A stretch of DNA of 64,000 nt from Entomortierella parvispora E1425 (Eukaryota; Fungi; Mortierellomycota). The translations under genes and the position numbers were made by a program. Below, piece by piece: positions 2,709-50,086 of the stretch (its first letter is position 1; every line of letters starts with the position of its first letter). The notes under the pieces are model-generated. The model was not told the origin of the DNA. It was given only the letters and a program-made list of their open reading frames with translations, and searched no databases. Where the stretch lies: positions 1,364,001 through 1,428,000 of the forward strand of contig BQFW01000012.1 in assembly GCA_020891255.1 (NCBI GenBank), in the 5' to 3' direction.

Positions 2709-5700
2709 ATGCTGCCCACCGAGGACGAGCATCGGCGCGATCATCTCGACCAGGAAAGCGACGGCACCTCTGATTCGAACGACGAGTTTGCAAGTGCATC
2801 CGAGGGCGATGATGACCTGCCCTGGGAGCCTGTCGTGATTCGTAGTCCTGTCATTCCCAGGTCCAGTCCTTTGTTGACCACGCATCAGCAGCCAGTCGCT
2901 GCACCAGACCGTGACACTCCAACCCCTACGCCGTCGTCGACCCAGGTCAGGCACCAGCACCAGCACCACCAACACACACACCGGCACCATGAACAGCGCG
3001 AGGAGGAGCACCATTACCAAGTCCAGGAACACTCCCAGCTGCAACAACAACCTCGACAGCAGTATGTACATCAGGCTTCGAGTCCAATGCATACACAACA
3101 GCTCCATGGGAACCAATACCAGAATCCACAACAGCATCAGTCTGTTTCTGGGTCACAAGAACAGTGGGGCAGACATGAACCCAGTGTCAGTGATGTGCAG
3201 CACCAGCACCAGCACCAGCACCAGCACCAGCACTCTCAATCGCGACAAGAATTGCACATTCGTTCGCACCAAAGCCAGTTCTCTTCGTCATCGTCGACAT
3301 CTGGCCAGACACAGATCAATCCTAGTAACCCCATCTCTCGGGCCCCGCCAAAGTTGCGTGAGCGTATGCGCCATAGCCCTGTCCCACACTCTAGGATCGT
3401 AAAGGCGTACCTCGACCCCCATGCAGCGACGGCAGTGCAACAGCAACACCAGCTGACGCCAGAGACGATTCGTCAAGCCTGGCTGCAGGATCAGCAGGAT
3501 ACGTCTTCTCAAGAAAGCAGTGAAGATGAAGTGGACCACAGCCGAGTGAATATGCGCCAGCAACCCGGATCTTCCCAGTCTGCTCATCCTGCCCAGCCTC
3601 CGATGCAGTCGCAGAAAACCCCAGTTCAAGCAGGTAGTGCTCTTGTGTAGAGATATTACTCATGTATTGATGATGAATGGCCTGCAAGGCACTTGCTGAT
3701 CTGATAACTATATGTTGTTGTATAGTACACCCCACTGCTCTGGGACCATCCTCGCATCAGATCCAACATCAACAAACACGACAGGACACAGCGCCTCCAA
3801 GGACTAGGCCATTTTCACCTCCACCGTCAGAAACCTCCAGAGCTTCTTCTGAGGCTCCCGTTATTCAGTCCATTGCTCAGCCTCAGCAGCCTCTTGCTGC
3901 CATCCACCATGAGGCCTCTGACACTGAAGAAGTTGCGTCGGGCTGGGGCTTTGATGACGAACTTGATATCTCTCCCTTTGACCAGACACTGGACCATTAT
4001 CAGGAACAGCAGCAGACAACTACTTTGCCTGCCGCCCACATGTCTGAGGCTCAGGAACCCATTGCACTCGAGTTTGCCACCGGTAACGTCCAGCAAGAGG
4101 TGCAATCGTTCGATCCCGAGCCATTGCCCTCAGTTGACATGGATGAATCATGGGGCTTTGACGAGAATATCGTCATTGAAGAACCTATCTACGACGACTT
4201 TTCCAGCTCTAGTGTCGAGACACATTTACAACACCAAGAAAGTAGTGACTATCGCCCCACGCACGCGGTTCATGAGGATGCAACAACATCAGCAGCGGAT
4301 GCATGGGACTATGATGATCAGCATCTGGAAATTACAGAGCCTCTACAGCCCATGGACAAGACCCCATCGTTCTCAGAGCCCCTGCCTCACCAGGCTCAAC
4401 CTGAGGCAGAGAACCATCCTCATATTGACACCGTTCACGAAGATAATGAAGAAGAGGATGCCTGGGGACATGATGAACCTCTGGTAATTGAAGAGCCTCT
4501 GCAACCCATGGAAACGACCCCATCGTCCTCAGAGCCCCTGCCCCAGCAGGTTCAACCTGAGGTAGAGGACTATCCTCATATCCACACTGTTCACGAAGAT
4601 AACGATGCAGAGGATGCCTGGGGACATGACGCCGATCTGGATATCGATATCGAAGGGGCCCCAGCTGATTACGAGACCTTTAACCTTGGAACTCCTGACA
4701 CGACTCAGGCAGCAGTGGAGAACCCATCTTGGGGGTATGATAACGCAATGACAAGCGACGCATTGTCTGCAATCCCCTCCGGCCATGGAGTTGACGAAAC
4801 TACAGTTTCTCAAGTGGATGTTCATCCGACATCAGAGTCGGCAGTGGAGGTGTCTTCCTGGGGATTTGATAGCATAGCAGCAAACGAAATATCGACCGAA
4901 ATCTCAACCAGTCACACGATTGATACGACTACCTCTTTTCAGGAACAGGCTTATCACCATGAGGATGTGATGCCTTCAACCAACGACTTGGAAGCAGAAG
5001 GCCTCATGGAGAGCTCGCATGACGACTCCATTGCTGACGTTAGAGAAAGCGATACCAGGCCAGAGGAGACACTGATCTCTGGTGATCAGGTACCGACTGT
5101 GCCGGAAGAAGCAATCTCGCAGGAAGAAGCCCACATCCACGACGCAATCATTGACCTCGGTGGCTTTGAACAGGATGTCGCCGCAGAAGACGGTTGGGGA
5201 TATGACGACGTTGTTGTGCAGGATGTTCAGCCCGTCTTTGTGGAGGAGCGTCAGCACCAGCATTTGCAGGAAACCGAGCTGTCGGAAGTTCAGCCTGAGA
5301 CAGAAAGTTATATTGAGCATGGTAAGTCATTGTCTCAGCGCAGCTATCTTGAACCGTCAACATGCAGAGTTTGCGCTTATATCTAACTCTGAGCCGTCAT
5401 TTGTGATGTAGTAAAAAACATTTCACACAGGATGGAGCAGGCAACATTGACAGAGTTACACGAGTCGGACTATCCCTCTGCCACCGAGAGCGATAATGAG
5501 CACGATTCTGAAGTTCAAAAGGTGAGTCATTGGGCCATGTACATGAGGCCAACCTTTTGACGCGTCAATGGTATATCCGCATGATCACTGACTTTGGGTT
5601 TTGCTAGGTTCTTGGAGTTTCTACCAACGAGACCCTCAGTGAACAAGAAGATAACACCCTCTCCGTGGCGATGTCTGGAACTCTGCTGTCTGCAAGCACT

Positions 5701-8700
5701 GTCGACCAACAGATCTCCACCCATCCGACTGTTCGTGATAATGACATGATTGAGGATCTGCAGCAAGACCTTACAGACCTCAGGCCATTGCTCATGCGAG
5801 ACCATCTCCCAGTGTTTATTGACGGATCTTCTCGTGATACGCCGCTTGATCAGTCCGAGGTCGAATCTTTGGCGGACAGCACAGGCTCACACCAAAACCA
5901 GCAACACGGAGAATTCGACTCTGAAGGCAGCGATATATACGGCGATCTTTCGACTGCTCGCTCGGACATGAAAACTTCGTCAAACCGACTGAATGAGATT
6001 CTGGATGACGATGACTACCTGGAGCATATGGAGCGAGGTGTCCCCATGAACCGATCGATCAGTACGCCTTACAGCGATGAAGAGATCCCCAAGTTCATAG
6101 TTGAGGATGACCTTGCAGAGTTGATGGAGCGCGGGGAGCCTCGACCTGTGGACGGAGTTCTCAGGCTGGAGTCGGCTGGTTCGGCTTCGGAATCTGAGGC
6201 AGAGAGCTTGGAAGACAGCCGAGCAAGAGTCTTGTTCGAAGAACCCTCCACGTCACTAGACCATAGAACTTCGTCCGTGTTGGACGATGCTGCCGCAAGT
6301 CAACAGGAAATGTCAGTCCCTGAAGAGGTAATAGCTTGCAGTTATAATTATGGTGAAGTTGATTGCACATCCTTGAGAGAGATCTAGTAAGCTCATTGTA
6401 ACATTTTCATAGGCAATCATTGCTGTAGAGTCAGGGGAGGACAGTGCAAAAGTTGAAGATGCCTCTATTGAAGTTGGCGACGATCACGATCCCAATAATC
6501 CGTTTAGTGATGCAGCCGCCCTTGATGACCAACGTGACCTTGTTGTTCCAGAAAAGGAGGAGGAGGAGCCGATTACTGAATCCCTCCCCATTGCAGTTGA
6601 CCACCAGGATGAGGCTAGTCCGGTTCTAGAGGAAGATGCCTGGGCGGCTCAAGATGAGATTAAGGTCACGGTGGAGCCGATAGAAACATCCCTGAATACC
6701 GCTGCTGACGCGTTTGTTCCCGAGACTTCACAGACGTTTGGTAACTCTAACAATCCTGCCGAGGAAGACACCGAAGTCCGTCCTATCTTGTCATCTACAT
6801 CCACTACAAGCCTGAAGGTCGGCGCCATTATCCATCATGCTCCAGTGGACCAGCAGGAGGAAATTACAGAAAACGCATGGGGCTGGGATGAGGATGAAGT
6901 CGGCGTGCATTTGGAGATTCAGAAGGAAACGCCTCCATCCATTCATGGCGAATCTTTGACTTCGCCTGACTCTAATTCAACAGAGCAGGCGTCACCTCAG
7001 ACTGGTGCTTTGACGACTGCGGATCCCGTGGATCTTCTTTTTAAACAATTGGAGGGTCAATCCGCGACTGCATTCCAGCAAACGTCTATAATCAACTCAT
7101 CTCTGGTTGGTGCGTCCACGGCAACGACCTTTGACGTGGACGAATTCTTTAAGGAGTTTACAGATCCTCTTCCTGCTGCCGCTCCTGCACCATTTGAGCA
7201 CACCCGTGAGGAGTCCGTCTCAGAGCCTTTGTCACAGCCATCTGAGAAATTGAGCACGCAACAGAGCCAACCCCATGATGCGCCAAAGCGGACCTCTGGT
7301 GTTTCATTCGAAGCCACGATTGAGGGGGACGAGGGTGCAGATGATGCGTGGGGTATGGACGCACCATGGTCAGACTTCAAGGAGCAGTCGCAAGAAACTG
7401 CAGCAGAGGTAGTTTCTGCGGATGTCACTTCTTCCGCTCAAATGGACACGCCCTTTTCACTATCAGCGCCTATTGCTCAGGAGGAACGTATCGCCCTTGA
7501 AGAATCCGACCTTATGAACGATAACCAGAACCTGCATGAACACACCATCGCCCAGGTCAACCTGGAAGAGCAGGACTTTGTGTTGCAACAACCCCAACAC
7601 ACTCTCGTGAGCCACTCCGCTTTCGAAACGGAGCAAGTTTCGTCCTCCATAGTCGAGACAAAAGTGGCAGACTTTGCTGTCGATCCTTGGGATGTCGAGG
7701 AGCCTGTTGCCCACAAGACTTCCGCACCAGAACCACAACAGGTCAAGGAGACTTTCCTGGAAGAAAAGATCTCGGAATCGGACCTTGGCGAGGTGGACGC
7801 TTGGGATGAGCAAATCGACATTGGTGTCCACAGTGATGTTTTGGAACGGACTACAGAGGTTACTGCAGAAGTGACTACAAAGGAACACAATGACGAACCA
7901 GTCCTCGAGGAATCCTTGAACCTTGATTTGCAACCAAAGGATGAACATGATATCTCAGTACAAGCAGACCCTTGGGATGACCCTATTGAGGACATTATCG
8001 AAAGCACAGGGGGCATGGAGCAGGATACAGAGACAGACCCCTGGGACGAACCCATTAATGTCATGTCCACAGTCCACGAGGCAGAAGATATCTTGGAAGA
8101 CGCCAAGCCTGAGCCAGCGGATCCCACCCTGAGTTCTGCCACAATCAACCATCCAGATGTGAAGCCCGATGAAAAGGAGATAGCTTGGAGACTCGATGAT
8201 GGCACTTCTCAGCATCACTACGAGGAGGTTGTAGAGAGCGAGACGTTTGCCCCGACAGAGGTGGACTCGACCACAGCAATCATGTCCCCTCATGACCGCC
8301 TCTTTTCGGACGACATTCACCACCTTCCACCCTCCCTTGCAAGCGCTGCCCAGCTTTCTCCCAAGGCAACGCCTGCTTCACCAAGTGCTCAGTTTGCGCC
8401 GCCTTCACCCGTGTTTGAAGTCAGTGAAGCTGTTCATAAACACCATGAGCACCATGAGCACCATGCTCAAGACAACGACGAGCAGGATGCTTGGGGCGAT
8501 GATGACCAGGTGTTGCAAGATCTTCTGCCTCAACAATCTGAACAAGGGGGCGACAATATGGAGGCCCATCACACAGTGGAAGAGCGAGAAGCCGTGGTGG
8601 ACGACTCCCCAGCCCAGGTTGAAGAGATGCCCCTGGAGGAGCTGCCGCAAGTTGACACTGAGGCGCTTGATAACAGCTGGGGTTTCGACATGGACGACGA

Positions 8701-11700
8701 AGATCATGCCGATGCCCCTTCAGAGCCCAACCACCCAACTGCGGTCACTCTTCCGGTTGTGACTTCTACACTTTTGGATGCAGGCCACAGGACTCCATCA
8801 CCTACTGCGGCAGGAGGTCTTTCTCCTCTGACCATTCGTAAGAACAGTCTTTTGGTCGCGCCTAGTGGCAGCGGAGGGGATAGCAGTGAGAGCAACGACG
8901 ACAATGCAAGTCAAAGCCCTTGGCAGGATATTTCCCCAGCATCCGTTTCCAAGAGAAGCGAGGCAGGAATGAGCGTTGGGTCCGAGTTTGAGTCTGAGTA
9001 CTCTGTCCGATCTCTGGATGATGACGAGAGACATATCCACGGTGCAGCACCCGAGTCGGATCATGAAGCTCGGCGCCATCGCCGATTAGGATCTATTAGT
9101 GAAGACGACCACAAAAAGGATGGCATGGTCAGCGCCATGTCGTGGACTGACCTGAACCATGATGATGACTGGCAGGATAACACCGCTACCCTCGACAGTG
9201 TCACTGGGGGAGAGACACATTTCAAAGAACATGCTCATCACACTAAAGATACATCCTTGGAATCGTCATCGTCTAAGGGTGTTGAGTCTAGTAGCCAGAG
9301 TGCTGGCGAGTTGGTTGATCTTCCCGACATCAGTGGAGTGGATAGCTGGGATTTTGACCATGACGAGGAGGATGATGTTGAGGTTACCAAAACAACATCC
9401 GCCTTCATGGACCAGACACCCACCACGGCTAGGTCCTCGATGTTTTCCCGGGATAATCTCAAGACACCGGACATGAGCAGAGACATCACTGGCACAGGCG
9501 GACTTCAGCGCGATACGTCCTTTACTGGCAGCAGCTTTGCCTCTGTATCGCCTGGAGGTCGCACAACCCTGTCCTCGTATCAGTCTAGTTTGGCAGGCTC
9601 TGTTCCTCCTTCACCCGGCAACACCATCCACCAGTCAACAACGACGACTGCTGCAGGATCTAATACTGATCAAGCAGAAGTTGAGGACGACTCACATTTG
9701 CCTTTGGCGATCCGTCAACAACGGGCTCGACTTGCTGCCAAGGGTAAACCATTGCCCCCGATCTCAAAGTACAAGAGTACAAAGACAGAATCTTCTTCCT
9801 CTTCTTCGTTCACTACTACCAGCCGTACTGTCAACTCGCCTTCTCCGAGACTTGCTTCTGCGACGACGTCTCCAGTCATTTCTTTCTCGAGCCCAATTGC
9901 CAGTAGCACCACTACTGCTTCTGGAGCAGGCAGCATTCTGCCAGTTCCAGACCAGAAGGTGCTGTCCCCTGCACTTCAAAAACAGAAGGAGAGGCTAGAG
10001 CAGAAGCGCGCTGCGGCCGCTGCGGCTGCTGCAGCCAAGAAGTTGGTGGCTGTTGACGCTACAATGTCTACAACGACTGCCTCCTTGACCAGTCCTAAAC
10101 TGGCAGCTTCTGCTCTTTCAACAAGCACTTCAGGATCGAACCTCAGGTCGTCACTGCCCCCACTCGCCAATGACACGTCCAAGACACCCTCACAACCAGC
10201 TGGAGCCTCATTGGCAAGTATTCTGTCCCCTGTGAGTGATCTCAACCAGGCCTCGTCTCGTCGCCGAGGATCTGGAGCCATTCCAAGCACATCTCCTACT
10301 GGTATTCCTGGCAACAACACAGACAACAGCGGCAGCTTTGGCGGCAAGATCAAGGCAGCAACGCCCTCGTCGCCTCTGTCGGAAGGATTCGTGAGGCGAA
10401 GCAAGGACGGTCATCGACCGACAGGTCTTTGGTCTCAGGAGCATGAGGATGAGCAGGATTCATGGGATCAAGGAGTGGTGCACACGAGTCAGAGCGATGT
10501 TTTCAGACATGGTGTCTCCCACAAGAAGGGTTCTCGAATGTCGACCTCTTCTTCTGGCTGGGATCATACTTTGGACGAGGAGGATTTGAAGGAGCGACAA
10601 AAGCAGGAGGATCAGCCTCTGTCTGGATCTGCAAAGAGTCCATCGAGTGCCACAGTCTCGAAACCTTCGCTGTTGTTCTCTCCCAAGACACCTGTATCCT
10701 CCTCCACCCCTTCATCCTCTTCCTTCTATCAGCAAACAGTCCCTGGCCTGGATGAAGTAGACGATGAAAAGAAGGAGAGCGAAGAGATCAGATCGACCGT
10801 GTATTTGAAGACCAGCAGTGACGAAAAGGAATCAAAGTCCTTGGACACTGAGGCCTATGATCCCTATGGACCCGCAGCCTCCCGCCCACAGCCCCCTCCC
10901 TTGAAGACCCACAGCAGGACCCAGAAGGCCAAGAGCTCGTTCGAGGAAGACCGCAACGAATCATCCACTGAATTTAGCTCCCATCGTGAGGTTCTGATGG
11001 ATTCGTCCATTTCGTCTCCCAGCGGCGTGTCTCTCATGTCGCCGACCTTGGGCGGAAGCTTTAGTATGAGCCATCGCCACGACTCTCATCGTGGACATGC
11101 CAGCGGTAGTCATAGTCACCTCCACCACCACAGCACTGGCGGGGCCTCGGGAGGCGGAAGTCTTGTGGGCGATATTAGCAGCCTCCTCAAGGAAAAGAAG
11201 AGCCCAGCTTCTGGATCAGACAACAGCAGCCAACACTTTAATGATAATGACTACAAGGGCAAGTCTGGCAGCTCCCTGACGGCATCCACTTCCTCCCACG
11301 CCCCTACGACCTCCTCGACCACCGCTCCTAGTCGACCTGCACCCAAAGCGGGCGGCGGCGGTTGGTCTTTTGGATCCCTTCTCAGCTCTGCTGTGGCGGT
11401 GGCGACAGAGACGATCGATAAGGCCTATGAGAGTTTGGACCCCGAGTACAGTCGAATGAAGACCCGAGGCGGTGGCTCGACCACCTTCTCGGACGACGGC
11501 ACCGACATGGATCCCATGGCCCACGAGAGTCAGAGCCCCTTCAAGAAACCCGGTTATGTCGTCGGCGGAAGCTCCTTGGCTTTGGGCCTGGCCTCTATCA
11601 CGACCACGAAATCATCCCCCTCGACGCCAGCCCCACCCCCTTCGGTCCCCGCACCAGCGTCCTTTGCGTCCAAGCAGGAGCCAGGACGGTCCAAACCTTC

Positions 11701-45046: not shown

Positions 45047-47236
45047 ATGCCGCCCAAGAAGAGAGCCGCTGACGACGAGGGACACGAAGCCAAGACCTCG
45101 GATTTCAAGAAGTACATTGCCGCATATGCCGCAACTTCTACAGCCCGCACTAGCTCTCTATCGAAATTACAAGAGACTGTTGTCAAAAAGGAAGAGCCGG
45201 ACAATGCAGGTCTTATTGTCACAAAGAACACGTTAATGTGGTTCAGAACCGATCTTCGACTACAGGACAACACGGCCCTCCATGCGGCATCTATAAGAGC
45301 CAAGGTCGGGAACAGCTTCCTGGTTGGACTCTACATCATCTCTCCAGAAGAGTGGCGGGATCACGACGAGGCGCCAGTGAAGATTGACTTTTGGATGAGA
45401 AATCTGCATTGCCTCAGAGAGTCTTTGGAAAAGTTGGCGATCCCTTTGGTGATCAAGACTGCGATTCACAAAGACGACATCCCTGGAATCGTGCAGTCTG
45501 TGGTGGAAGACATGTACATCAGTCATGTCTTTTGGAACGCTGAGCTCCTGGTCGACGAGCGCAAACGGGATGCTTCCGTCAAGAAGGCACTTTTGGCCCG
45601 TTCAAACGTGCAGGTGGAAGAGTGCGATGATCAGTGCATCGTTCCTCCAGCAGATGTCAGGACCAAAGTGAGCCATCTCCAGGCGATTGTAAAGAGACCT
45701 GGGTCAGAGGGTCCTGTATTGACACGTTCTTTTTGACCTCCCTTGAATGTTTTTGGCAGACAGGAAATCCGTACGCGGTTTTTACACCGTTTTACAATAC
45801 CTGGTGCAAACTCGTGGATTCTGAACCTCACTACCTCGAGCTCTCTCAGACCCCAGAAAGGAACCCACCAGAGATCAGGACTACTTTTGCACAATACTTT
45901 GATCAGAACCCACCATCGTCATATCCACATACTCTGGACATCAATAATATGAAGGAGCTCTACCCTGCAGGAGAATCACAAGCGCACAGACGTTTGGATT
46001 CATTCATCAAGAACAAAGCATCTCGATATCAGGAAGGAAGAGATATCCCACAACTTGAAGGGACTAGTGTCTTGAGTCCTTATCTTGCAGCCGGTGTCAT
46101 CTCGGCTCGACAGTGTGTTGCCGCCGCAAGAACCGCCAACAAAGGGAAACTCACGACTGGAGATGAGGGTCTCAAAACCTGGATCAAAGAAGTTGGCTGG
46201 AGGGTAAGCAAAAAGGACTCGTGTCATACTCGTCTGCGCTTCTCTCTCTCTGGCCTTCTTCCTGACTCTTTTCATTTTTTCTTGCCATGGGGACACGTAG
46301 GAGTTCTATCGACACATTGTCGTCGCATTTCCACGAGTGTCCAAAAGCCACGCTTTCCAGCCCAAAACAGAGACTGTCGAATGGAGCGACAATGAGGAGC
46401 ACTTTCAAAGATGGTGCCAAGGGAAAACGGGCTTTCCGATAGTGGATGCAGGTTAGAGAAACACGGATCAAAGAGACTAGGCTTCTTTTCCTCCCATACC
46501 CTGAGCGAACTACTGATAATAGTCAGTTTTCATAACTAGGAATGCGCCAACTTAACTCCATTGGGTACATGCACAATCGTCTAAGAATGATCACAGCCTG
46601 TTTTCTCGTCAAGGACTTGCTTATCAACTGGCAACAGGGCGAAAAGTACTTTATGAGTCAACTGATCGACGGCGACTTGCCATCCAACAACGGTGGTTGG
46701 CAATGGGTAGGCTAAAAGAGTGTGTTTTTATTCTCAAAGGAGAGAGTCTTATTTGTAGCCCTGTTAAAAGCCCATCATTCATTTATTCCTCGCCCTCTGT
46801 TTTTTTTTTTTCTTCAAAACTCTACTTCTAACCCCTCCACGTAGAGTGCCTCGACAGGAACCGACGCTCAGCCTTACTTTCGCGTATTCAACCCATTATT
46901 ACAGTCGCAGAGATTTGACGCTAAAGGAGACTTTATCCGAAGATGGGTGCCTGAGCTCAAGAGTCTGAACGACAAGCAAATTCACAACCCACATGGTGTT
47001 CTTTCTCCAAAGGAGTTTGCAAAACTCAGGTAGGCAGGGGTGTGTGTGATCTATTAGACAGCGTGATAAAATACGGGTATCCAAACGACGCGCTGTGAAG
47101 ATATTTTGCCCATCAGACGTTAACAAGGCTGTTGCATATGAATGCACTTCCTAGGTACCCGAAACCGATCGTAGACCATGCTTCAGCCAAGGCAAAGTAT
47201 ATCGCAGAGTTCAAACGCGTGCTCGCCCTTGCATAG
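45047..47236 (+). CDS. PHR1: Class I CPD DNA photolyase
   Basis: [37 protein letters not shown]|[13 protein letters not shown]|[46 protein letters not shown]. Exons join in frame. Confidence 0.95.
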
Positions 47237-47329: not shown

Positions 47330-47700
47330 AAAAACTGATCTCAGTATTCTTGACACACCAATACCGCAACAAGAACGCTCTTAGAATAAAAAAAATGTCA
47401 TTGGCTGCAGGGGCATCCCATGCACCCGAAATAATGGTGTTGTCTATATTGATCGCAAGCGTTCTGTGTTGGCTCTTGAAGCACAAAAGACTCATCTTAC
47501 ATTGCTAGTCCTCAACGTCAGCATGAAGATCGTCTAGTCCATAAATCTCGGCACAGACGCGATTACAGACGGCGGTAGCAACCTTTTCCTTGGATGCGAG
47601 TTGGGCAGCTTCTGAGGTTGAAGCACAGGGAACAAGCTCAATACCCTTCAATCGGCTGTTCAAGAAAGTCTGACACTGAGCCAAGGCCATTATGAGAACA
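47330..47700 (-). pseudogene. Prephenate dehydratase (PHA2/pheA-like) internal fragment, decayed and 5'-truncated
   Basis: ALAQCQTFL...STSEAAQLA...AVCNRVCAEIYGLDDLHADVED then TAG. After a 57-nt intron (47500-47444) comes NT-IISGAWDAPAAND, lacking the conserved TRF. The upstream acceptor appears lost and no N-terminal exons are present. Confidence 0.75.
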
Positions 47701-47824
47701 GTTAGTGACTAGATGTAAGTCGTCCATTTGAACAGGAATATGATGACATCACACGATGTGCACCTATATATTGACTTAGGATAGGAGTATTGCGATATGA
47801 ATTCTTGGCTGACAAACCCTTGCA

Positions 47825-50086
47825 ATGTTTGCGGATTTTAGTCTTCTGTACATGGATTCGCGGACTATTCAGATCGTGGGCTCAAAGACGAAAGATGACT
47901 CGGTGCAGGACCTATGGTCCGAGAAGAAGAAAAAACATCGCCAGCCGTCAGCGACCACCAAGCACCCTATCCGTCAGCAAGAGCTCATCGAGTCTGGAAT
48001 AACAGCGGAGGCGGCGAGCGCGAACGCTCAGAAGGTAGATGCGACTCTGAAGGAAAAGTCAAGCCAACTGCGACAGCTTAACCGTTTAGTGGCGAAGCAA
48101 GCGCGCCAGCAGCAACTCCTCGCCAACAAACTTCGGGACACACTTGCTTCTCTAAAGAACACTGCTGTCTCTGAAGATGCACACAATGGCTCGACTTTTG
48201 TCGACGACCCCTTGGATGGAATGGGCACGGATGGTGGCACTTCAAAGTTAACGGCTGCGGATTCGCTCCAAAATTTGTACAGGGATTTTGACGATCAGCG
48301 ACAACTTGTCCAACAAACACGAGCATCAATATTCCCGCTCAACACCGAAGTCAAGGACCTAAAGGAGGAAAAATACGCCCTCAATAAGTTTTCAAAAGAC
48401 AGGAAAGGCGCGCCAACATCTACATCCTCACGTGCAAAGGGGAAACAAAGGTCGGATAAGAAGGCTGCTACTAGATCTACCACAAGCACCAAATCCGACA
48501 CGAGTATCACCAAGGGTCCTTCAGCAGAATCCTCGTACACGTCCACTCCGACTGTTAATCGCCCTGGCACCATGGACTATGTCGAGGCAACATGCATACG
48601 TCAACTCAAGAGAGAAATTGAGGATAACAACGCAACAAATAGCCGCAAGATAACGCTGGTCCCGGGGGGGACTGACCCAGGCGCCAAAGTTCTTTTTGAA
48701 ACCGTTATCGTCCCCGAGAGAACCCTTATCAAACTCCAGAATCGATACCACTTATTATCTGGAAAATTACTGGACTCGGATGAGGCAACTGCAGATCAGG
48801 CCGAGTTCGACAAAGCACTGGCTGGCAGCAGGGAGGAGGCTCTTGCGCAGATCAAAATACCCAAAACCCAGAAGACCACCGTTGGAAACATCCGGCACAT
48901 ATCGGGGCTCACGCGACAAGCAAAACAAAGAAAGACAGCCGTCAAAGGAAGCAAAGATATTGCGGCCATATATGATGAGCTTGGCGAACAGTCTGCTCAC
49001 AGAGCAAACACCACGGATGACCTCAAGATTGCTGCGGGCGTTCGGAGAAAGTCCTGGGACAAAGTTCGTGCCTTTGAGCTTTCAAATGCAAGAAAAAATA
49101 CAAGTCATAATGTTGAGCATCGGCTCCAAAGGGCATACGACTACTTTGCATCCAGGGAGCGACGCGAGTTCAAAAGAGTTGGTCAAGGTAAAACAATACC
49201 ATTCAAAAATGTGGCGCAGTTTATAGCTTCACGCTTCCATTATCTAACCAGATCTTTATTCCCGTCATGAATGCAATAGTCGAAGAGCCAATTCTTGAAA
49301 AGGTGCCCATCCAATCCAACGGCTTTTGCCCCTCCTGTAAAACTCATCACAGGCCGGAACTCATAAAGGACCCCCACGGGAAAGGAGCGCCTGGTGCTTA
49401 AACACCTAACGAACTGCCCAAAGACTTTACGTCGCGTCATACCGTTACATTTCCATGGAGCAGCTGGGATGGGTGTAGGTTCTCGGCTCAAGGGGAACGT
49501 AAAAATGGGTGGCAACAAGATCCCCCACCGTCACATGCAGCATGGGGCAGTTTGTAAAACAAACGAGAACAATACATCCAAGCGTTGTCCGTTTTGTTTC
49601 CAGTTCATACGACTTGCCCGAGGTCGCCGTCGGAAGAAGGGTACCTTGAAGCTTGTGAGGATCAATGGGGCGGTAGAGTGCACCAACCCGGAATGTATTT
49701 CCCACAAATGTGGGTATACCATTCGGGGGCGAGACGCCAACGCCGCCTTAAACATCGCAGTATCAGGGTACTCTCAGCTCACATCATCAGACAGAACAAC
49801 CCTTCGTCCTTTTGCAAGAACATCGCGACCTTGGTCGCAACCACTCCCCAACGTCGGCTCAAAGACCGAAGAAACTATCATCCAAATTCATCCAACCGGA
49901 TGCAAGGACGAATTGCGCTTGCCGCAACCTTACGTGAGTATCTTCAGGTCAAATTACACCGAAATCTTGTTACAATTATTTGGTCAGAGGTCTAATCCGT
50001 TTACTCTTGTTTTTTTTGTGACTGAAGACACCGTGAACGCGTTCAAGCTGTCTAAAACAAAACGTGACTGCGATCTGAATGTTTGA
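47825..50086 (+). mobile_element. Fanzor (eukaryotic TnpB-like RuvC nuclease) gene: spliced, one +1 frameshift, probably 5'-truncated
   Basis: RuvC-I GGTDPG (D 48674-76), intron 49188-49279, frameshift in C5 run 49371-75, RuvC-II TNENNTSKRC (E 49565-67), Zn finger CPFC...CTNPEC (49586-49696), RuvC-III RDANAALNI (D 49733-35). Reconstructed length about 720 aa. Confidence 0.85.
49900..50050 (+). ncRNA. Candidate omega-RNA scaffold / element right end (alternatively a 94-nt terminal intron)
   Basis: Stem TCTTCAG-G-TCA (49941-51) with TGA-CTGAAGA (50019-28) encloses a CCGAAAT...ATTTGG hairpin; palindrome TGAACGCGTTCA at 50034-45. The position 3' of RuvC-III fits omega-RNAs, but GTGAGT/CTAAT/AAG intron signals overlap it. 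Confidence 0.3.

Follow-up and report, generated by a model that had tools for sequence, protein, structure and literature searches.

Introduction

Fanzors are eukaryotic, TnpB-like RNA-guided RuvC nucleases, and the WED and REC parts of the solved Fanzors bind the scaffold of the omega-RNA, the duplex of guide and target and the target-adjacent motif (TAM). Their active site is rearranged in such a way that the canonical RuvC-II position is without glutamate and a conserved alternative glutamate is found downstream (PMC10530073). Here, a Fanzor-related locus of the soil fungus Entomortierella parvispora is described, which lies in a window of 64 kb, that is, the whole stretch of DNA that was analysed (assembly GCA_020891255.1, contig BQFW01000012; all coordinates are window positions, and features are on the + strand unless stated otherwise). 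In the original prediction, made from this DNA by itself, the locus was taken for a hidden, essentially complete nuclease of ~720 amino acids, divided between two open reading frames (ORFs). This part of the prediction did not hold, since the protein starts inside the coding sequence of a family form of ~1,540-1,570 amino acids. The locus is very probably a dead, 5′-truncated and frameshifted Fanzor1-type relic of a multicopy element family of E. parvispora and related fungi.

Gene structure and frameshift

The two ORFs, ORF1 (47825..49270, 481 amino acids) and ORF2 (49394..50086, 230 amino acids), had been proposed to form one gene, and this is the case: both halves are spanned without a frameshift by P0004, a metagenome homologue of 686 amino acids, by L002, a homologous locus in which the two ORFs are parted by an intron alone, and likewise by the paralogs P0156 and P0157. 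The NCBI model of the locus, EMPS_08825 (P0001), is annotated as a hypothetical protein of 494 amino acids and is 100% identical to the window. The retained exon that forms the ORF1 part (47825..49187) is followed by intron 1 (49188..49279), which is 92 nucleotides long, of phase 1, and reads GTAAAA...CTAAC...TAG. This intron is used in EMPS_08825 exactly as it was predicted and has a counterpart at the same codon position in L002, and once it is spliced out the frame carries on into VEEPILEKVPIQSNGFCPSCKTHHRPELIKDP. The rest of the coding sequence in the ORF2 frame (49376..49933), which comprises RuvC-II, the TNB zinc ribbon and RuvC-III, is 76% identical to L002 and 60% identical to P0156.

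A second, terminal intron (49934..50027, 94 nucleotides, GTGAGT...CTAAT...GAAG) separates this part from a last exon of only 9 nucleotides (50028..50036, ACACCGTGA), which encodes Thr-Pro-stop, with the stop codon TGA at 50034-36. The NCBI models of P0156 and P0157 contain counterparts of 94-95 nucleotides, as confirmed by translation, and the 9-nucleotide last exons of these paralogs read GCACAATAA and TCACAATAA. The six aligned loci with a terminal intron have in common GTRAGT, a branch-like TAAT/TAAC and a GAAAG acceptor. The end of ORF2 at 50086, which had been taken as the end of the gene, is therefore explained as read-through into the flank, and the coding sequence stops at 50036, past the conserved terminal intron. 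The reconstructed retained product, which ends at this position, has ~674 amino acids. Two spliceosomal introns, at conserved positions and used in NCBI models, are among the eukaryotic gene features of a Fanzor.

The reading frame is broken in exon 2 at a run of five C (CCCCC, 49371..49375), which carries a +1 frameshift relative to L002, P0004, P0156, P0157 and a copy of the element in the public run X2. As was predicted, the frame runs on into TGKERLVLKHLTNCPKT... (TGKERLVLKH...) when one C is left out, and the homologues read through this junction unbroken, L002 with ...PELVADPSCPTRKRLVLRH and P0004 with ...PELVPDNSHPSNRRLVLKH. The X2 copy, which is 93% identical, has exactly one base fewer at 49371 and reads GAC CCA ACG GGA (D-P-T-G) in frame. 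Since the X2 copy and the homologues are in frame, the removal of one C restores the ancestral state. In run X1, which has the same organism label, one contig covers 48624-49405 gap-free and has five C. Contigs of an independent short-read run thus show this state as well, which makes a homopolymer error of the long-read assembly unlikely. EMPS_08825 uses intron 1 and then terminates 10 codons past the C run. The extra C closes the frame after RuvC-I, so that at most one of the three catalytic motifs is translated, and the locus as it stands yields at most a product of 494 amino acids with this single motif. Two ways around the frameshift were rejected: a second intron that bypasses it, for which there is no GT...AG of usable length between the stops at 49364 and 49403, and programmed frameshifting at the C run, a site that is in frame in all relatives.

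Relationship to Fanzor1 and catalytic motifs

ORF2 matches Pfam PF07282 (Cas12f1-like_TNB) with an E of 3.4e-4 and, weakly, the NCBIfam model guided_TnpB, and an exhaustive phmmer search with it led to 339 related clusters. Phmmer searches of the PDB with each single ORF gave no match, and Fanzor1 was reached by the family profile alone: the best PDB match of profile A1, which represents 122 family members, is Spizellomyces punctatus Fanzor1 (SpuFz1, 8gkh; E 3e-6), with an alignment that covers the helical insert, E-x2-TS-x2-C-x2-C and RD. On the structural side, the AlphaFold model of P0004 has a predicted local distance difference test score (pLDDT) of 81, with 440 residues above 90, and the structures at ranks 1-6 of its Foldseek search are SpuFz or the Parasitella parasitica Fanzor, PpFz. 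Residues 217-656 of this model match SpuFz 357-633 with a Z of 16.3, and PpFz, CasPhi, Cas12f, the Guillardia theta Fanzor (GtFz), Fanzor2 and TnpB score below. The predicted TnpB/RuvC fold is in this way recovered in SpuFz, PpFz, GtFz, Fanzor2, Cas12f and TnpB, and the kinship of the family with Fanzor1, which had also been proposed, is supported by profile and fold. A split RuvC domain (I, II, III) with the TNB ribbon between II and III is indicated by Pfam, the profile, the homologue fold and the motifs of the window. As to the long helical inserts that had been predicted, an insert after RuvC-I is common to the family and SpuFz1; the N-terminal helices match generic coiled coils and not REC. 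A scan of a prokaryotic contig collection with P0004 gave no match.

All the motifs quoted in the original prediction, GTDPG, NENNTSKRCPFC, CTNPEC and RDANAALNI, were located. The RuvC-I motif GTDPG (48668..48682, Asp codon 48674-76) falls on strand 259-268 of the P0004 model, inside the part that is aligned to the RuvC of SpuFz. In exon 2, a C-x2-C-x2-H-H motif (CPSCKTHH, 49327..49350) has the counterparts CSSCRTHR in L002 and CTGCKTHH in P0004. The canonical RuvC-II position, which comes after strand 527-535 of the P0004 model, is occupied by HGAAG (49454..49468) and is without glutamate. The alternative glutamate lies 36 residues past HGAAG, beside TSKxCxxC, in the motif NENNTSKRCPFC (49562..49597, Glu codon 49565-67), which contains both the displaced catalytic residue and the first Cys pair of the TNB ribbon, and whose E, C and C are >90% conserved among 122 sequences. 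This motif is aligned to LDEYKTSSVCPRC of SpuFz1, with the alternative E in NENNTSK against DEYKTS of SpuFz1. The second Cys pair of the ribbon is provided by CTNPEC (49679..49696), in which C609 and C614 are nearly invariant, and the RuvC-III motif RDANAALNI (49730..49756, Asp codon 49733-35), with nearly invariant R626 and D627, is aligned to the RD of SpuFz1. The sequence motifs, accordingly, have the arrangement described for the rearranged active site of Fanzors, the D/E/D triad being read here from motifs and alignment only.

Long paralogs and truncation of the 5′ end

Paralogs without the frameshift, whose existence had been considered, are present in the same genome, namely EMPS_07617 (P0156, 1,541 amino acids) and EMPS_06637 (P0157, 1,570 amino acids), both with all three motifs, and further paralogs are EMPS_02746, 09751, 10907 and 06960. 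Other representatives of the family have 1,285-1,823 amino acids, and the full-length form about 1,300-1,800. The predicted start at 47825 is not the true N-terminus, as in tblastn the ATG falls inside the long form: residue 888 of P0156 and residue 946 of P0157 lie at window positions 47825/47828. ORF1 residues 1-451 align to P0156 888-1296 and ORF2 to P0156 1358-1506, and MFADFSLLYMDSRTIQIVG of the window equals the internal LVFADRLLFVDKNTVRIMG of P0156. An in-frame TGA is located five codons upstream of the annotated ATG (47810..47812), and the homology to the long form (QKYGLVFAD versus QTLAMFAD) reaches to about this TGA and then ceases. Nowhere in the 64-kb window is there a match to the upstream modules that L001, L002 and the long proteins have in common.

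What was lost can be read from P0157, in which an N-terminal domain is followed by WED/REC (~385-967), a coiled-coil hairpin, RuvC-I with GTDPG, a helical insert, CxxC-HH, the RuvC-II strand without Glu (HGAAG), the displaced Glu by TSKxCxxC, TNB and the RuvC-III RD. In a model of its residues 1-1200 (pLDDT 71.5), residues ~385-967 and beyond match SpuFz (18-471, Z 15.2), PpFz (103-444, Z 12.8) and GtFz (2-386, Z 11.9), and the stretch ~385-967 is the WED/REC module. WED/REC is thus found in the long paralogs of the genome, whereas the window copy retains just the last ~20 residues of the module. The 220 N-terminal residues that it does retain have no match to the WED or REC of any Fanzor or Cas12; they include a coiled-coil hairpin insertion followed by a low-complexity linker (47987..48394, according to the P0004 model), whose helices in P0004 (53-103 and 125-187, pLDDT >90) match generic coiled coils only.

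The window copy thus begins at the equivalent of P0157 residue ~946 and keeps the coiled coil, RuvC and TNB, whereas the first ~880 codons, with the N-terminal domain and almost all of WED/REC, are absent. Its origin may lie in incomplete copying or in a DNA-level deletion at a later time. As it still has both introns, it is not a retrocopy of an mRNA. Intact members of the family would be expected to act as omega-RNA-guided nucleases of a mobile element.

The long form has in addition an extra alpha/beta and helical N-terminal domain (P0157 residues 33-363; locus L007, gene 6001-11307; pLDDT about 70-90), for which there was no Pfam match and no clear fold match, only weak OTU-like leads from Foldseek and the ESM Atlas. 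A FEN1/XPG domain was looked for and not found: Pfam gave no XPG match in P0019, P0021, P0052, P0156 or P0157, and neither FEN1 nor EXO1 was among the fold matches of the P0157 N-terminus in the PDB or the Swiss-Prot models. A profile word search with the N-terminus of the long form added almost nothing.

Copies, ends and decay of the element

The repeat unit to which the locus belongs, a 5′-truncated Fanzor1-like copy, was delimited to 47790..50038 by the divergence of public-run contigs. The points of divergence on the left are 47789/47790/47799. On the right, X1 and X3 leave it at exactly 50038 into different flanks, which together with the window's own makes three contexts, and other contigs diverge at 50000-50036. 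The end of the coding sequence at 50036 is two bases before the end of the repeat. The word depth is about 115-145 in the body of the element and 190-300 in its last ~150 nucleotides, versus 74 in the single-copy flank. No second copy was found within the window, and no terminal inverted repeats were found around the window copy or the long paralogs.

A frameshift, different in each case, is present in all the copies that were seen. Copy B, a near-twin that is roughly 1-2% diverged, has a base missing at 48369 and 11 extra nucleotides after 49998. In the X2 copy a base is missing at 49431, and near the start there is a -1/+1 pair, which includes the loss of base 47827 of the ATG codon. Between the window and the X2 copy, the ratio of synonymous to non-synonymous substitutions in 49282-49600 is 13:5 (P about 3e-4), so that constraint on the protein must have lasted in this lineage until recently; such an excess is the expected one for copies of an active master element.

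A contig of X3 contains just the last ~157 nucleotides of the element (49881-50038) with unrelated sequence before them, and the depth peak there is about 4x single copy; solo 3′-end fragments appear to be commoner than element bodies. A perfect palindrome of 12 nucleotides, TGAACGCGTTCA, straddles the right end and the flank (50034-50045). It is not found at the other two read junctions and may therefore be due to chance.

A possible link to a transposase is seen at the long paralogs: a DDE_3 (Tc1/mariner-like) ORF lies upstream of both, and no transposase adjoins the window copy. About 3 kb upstream of the long paralogs (L006 2777-5740 and L007 3490-5744) are 87-92% identical between the two loci, versus only ~67% for the 3′ ends of the Fanzor genes themselves. 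The DDE_3 ORF of L006 is at 4115-4627 (E 2.5e-19), and the same locus has a pair of 29-nucleotide inverted repeats that start with ATACAGTG (2905-2933 and 3280-3308). The DDE_3 ORF may belong to a partner transposase or to a nested element.

Alternative explanations

Several points weigh against the interpretation of the locus as a dead, truncated relic. The left junction at 47790 is not spanned by any contig of X1, which makes the long-read assembly the sole source of the truncation point, and the flank 47684-47790 is represented in X1 by a contig of 134 nucleotides and depth 116 that runs on into 27 nucleotides unlike the window. A strain difference, contig simplification or a local assembly problem could account for the missing bridge. 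Contigs also drop variants and merge near-identical copies, so that the five-C state is not strictly proven for this copy as opposed to its near-twin. The splicing and expression of the gene are assumed from annotation and conservation, and the structural evidence comes from homologues that are 38-67% identical and not from the window protein.

The absence of a bridging contig is relevant to the explanation that fares best among the alternatives, according to which the truncation is an artefact or a strain difference and a full-length, still frameshifted copy was mis-joined to the flank at 47790. In X1, the flank contig and the element contig (from 47790) both continue into non-window sequence, and copy B and the X2 copy have common sequence upstream of 47790 that is absent from the window. 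Such errors, however, normally occur inside repeats and not at the edge between a unique flank and a repeat, the contig is 2.7 Mb in a long-read-scale assembly, and short-read contigs, which are simplified at branch points, can attest presence but not absence. A mis-joined full-length copy is, on balance, improbable.

Less credit can be given to an essentially complete and potentially active Fanzor of ~720 amino acids, with a sequencing error in the C homopolymer as its only defect and with its helical N-terminus in the role of REC. It is true that all three catalytic motifs are present, that a run of five C is a typical place for an assembly indel and that the annotated ATG opens a long ORF. 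This reading is nevertheless largely refuted by the alignment of the N-terminus to an internal position of longer paralogs, by the generic coiled-coil matches of the retained 220 N-terminal residues, by the presence of the five C in the contigs of a second data set and by the X2 copy, in which base 47827 of the ATG itself is missing.

Just as implausible is a domesticated, guide-free short form with only RuvC/TNB and the coiled coil, perhaps expressed through ribosomal frameshifting at the C run, for which the annotated gene model and the mostly synonymous substitutions relative to the X2 copy could be cited, but the frameshift site is not conserved (it is in frame in the homologues and in the X2 copy), each copy has a different frameshift, the same synonymous excess would be expected of copies made from an active master element, and the locus adjoins a prephenate dehydratase fragment in a stretch without any other annotated gene.

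Conserved 3′ block

A block with short hairpins at the 3′ end (49825..49965) is conserved at the DNA level in alignments of three and six loci, with stems at 49825-38 (GCGACC..GGTCGC) and 49889-902 (CATCC..GGATG), and the last ~140 coding nucleotides are conserved at this level even where the reading frames differ. RNAalifold predicted three hairpins for the block, with three pairs that have a compensatory change and a weak covariation term. The single-sequence thermodynamic fold of the 3′ end was not unusual (z -0.56), and a search of Rfam gave no match. A scan of metagenome DNA with the 3′ palindrome pattern, which is too unspecific, returned unrelated loci only, none of which passed tblastn. 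In Fanzors the omega-RNA is encoded at the 3′ end of the gene or at the right end of the element, and the conservation of the block is suggestive, and only suggestive, of a putative omega-RNA region.

Neighbouring genes

The locus is surrounded by ordinary host genes, with a DNA photolyase (PF00875/PF03441) at 45047-47236 and a DNA topoisomerase II from 50206. Directly to the left of the truncated Fanzor copy, on the - strand, an ORF of 61 amino acids (47508-47690) matches the prephenate dehydratase profile PF00800 (E 4e-14) over positions 103-165 only. The ORF, which is preceded closely by a stop and is not annotated as a gene, looks like a gene fragment.

Significance and comparison with known systems

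By itself the locus matters little, as it is a pseudogene fragment annotated as a hypothetical protein of 494 amino acids. Its use is that it corrects the annotation of EMPS_08825, that it illustrates that an ORF with a set of D-E-D motifs need not be a working Fanzor, and that it points to intact, unusually large Fanzor1 paralogs as candidates for work on ribonucleoproteins, omega-RNA and TAM. The decayed copies, with their different frameshifts, 5′ truncation and extra 3′ ends, record the spread and death of an element family in a fungal genome.

A tentative proposal, somewhat more open to doubt than not, is that giant Fanzor1 nucleases (about 1,300-1,800 amino acids) of Mortierella-type fungi form an undescribed clade, of which the relic is a member. 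Four features would set this clade apart: an additional N-terminal domain, a coiled-coil hairpin placed between WED and RuvC, a conserved terminal intron with a last exon of 9 nucleotides, and an excess of 3′-end fragments. Because this last exon ends two bases before the end of the element, the presumptive omega-RNA and right-end region would overlap the intron. EMPS_07617 and EMPS_06637, as intact members and predicted nucleases, may still be active.

SpuFz1 (PDB 8gkh, 9ceu-9cez) is the closest described system, being both the best profile match and the best fold match for RuvC and TNB. The family has in common with it the helical insert after RuvC-I, the displaced Glu in E-x2-TS-x2-C-x2-C and the RD, and residues ~386-1197 of the long paralog match SpuFz 18-471. 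The identity over the aligned fold, however, is only 15-16%, and the full form of the family is about 2.5x longer, with an extra N-terminal domain of ~360 amino acids and a coiled-coil hairpin of ~130 amino acids between WED and RuvC; the window copy differs further in that it is without WED/REC and frameshifted. PpFz (9cf0, 9cf1), likewise a large Fanzor of an early-diverging fungus, is similar in RuvC/TNB (Z 13.9) and in the WED/REC of the long paralog (Z 12.8), and the corresponding values for GtFz (9cer) are 10.8 and 11.9. PpFz and GtFz have no detectable sequence similarity past the motifs (E 5 in the A1 profile search), and their insertions differ. TnpB (ISDra2, ISFba1) and Cas12f have the same core of RuvC and zinc ribbon (Z 10-12), in line with the weak matches of ORF2 to PF07282 and guided_TnpB, but they are prokaryotic, intron-free proteins of about 400 amino acids, with the canonical RuvC-II glutamate and IS200/605 ends. 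Fungal Fanzors were already known, and the large size and gene-end architecture of the present family are a moderate novelty, which belongs to the intact paralogs.

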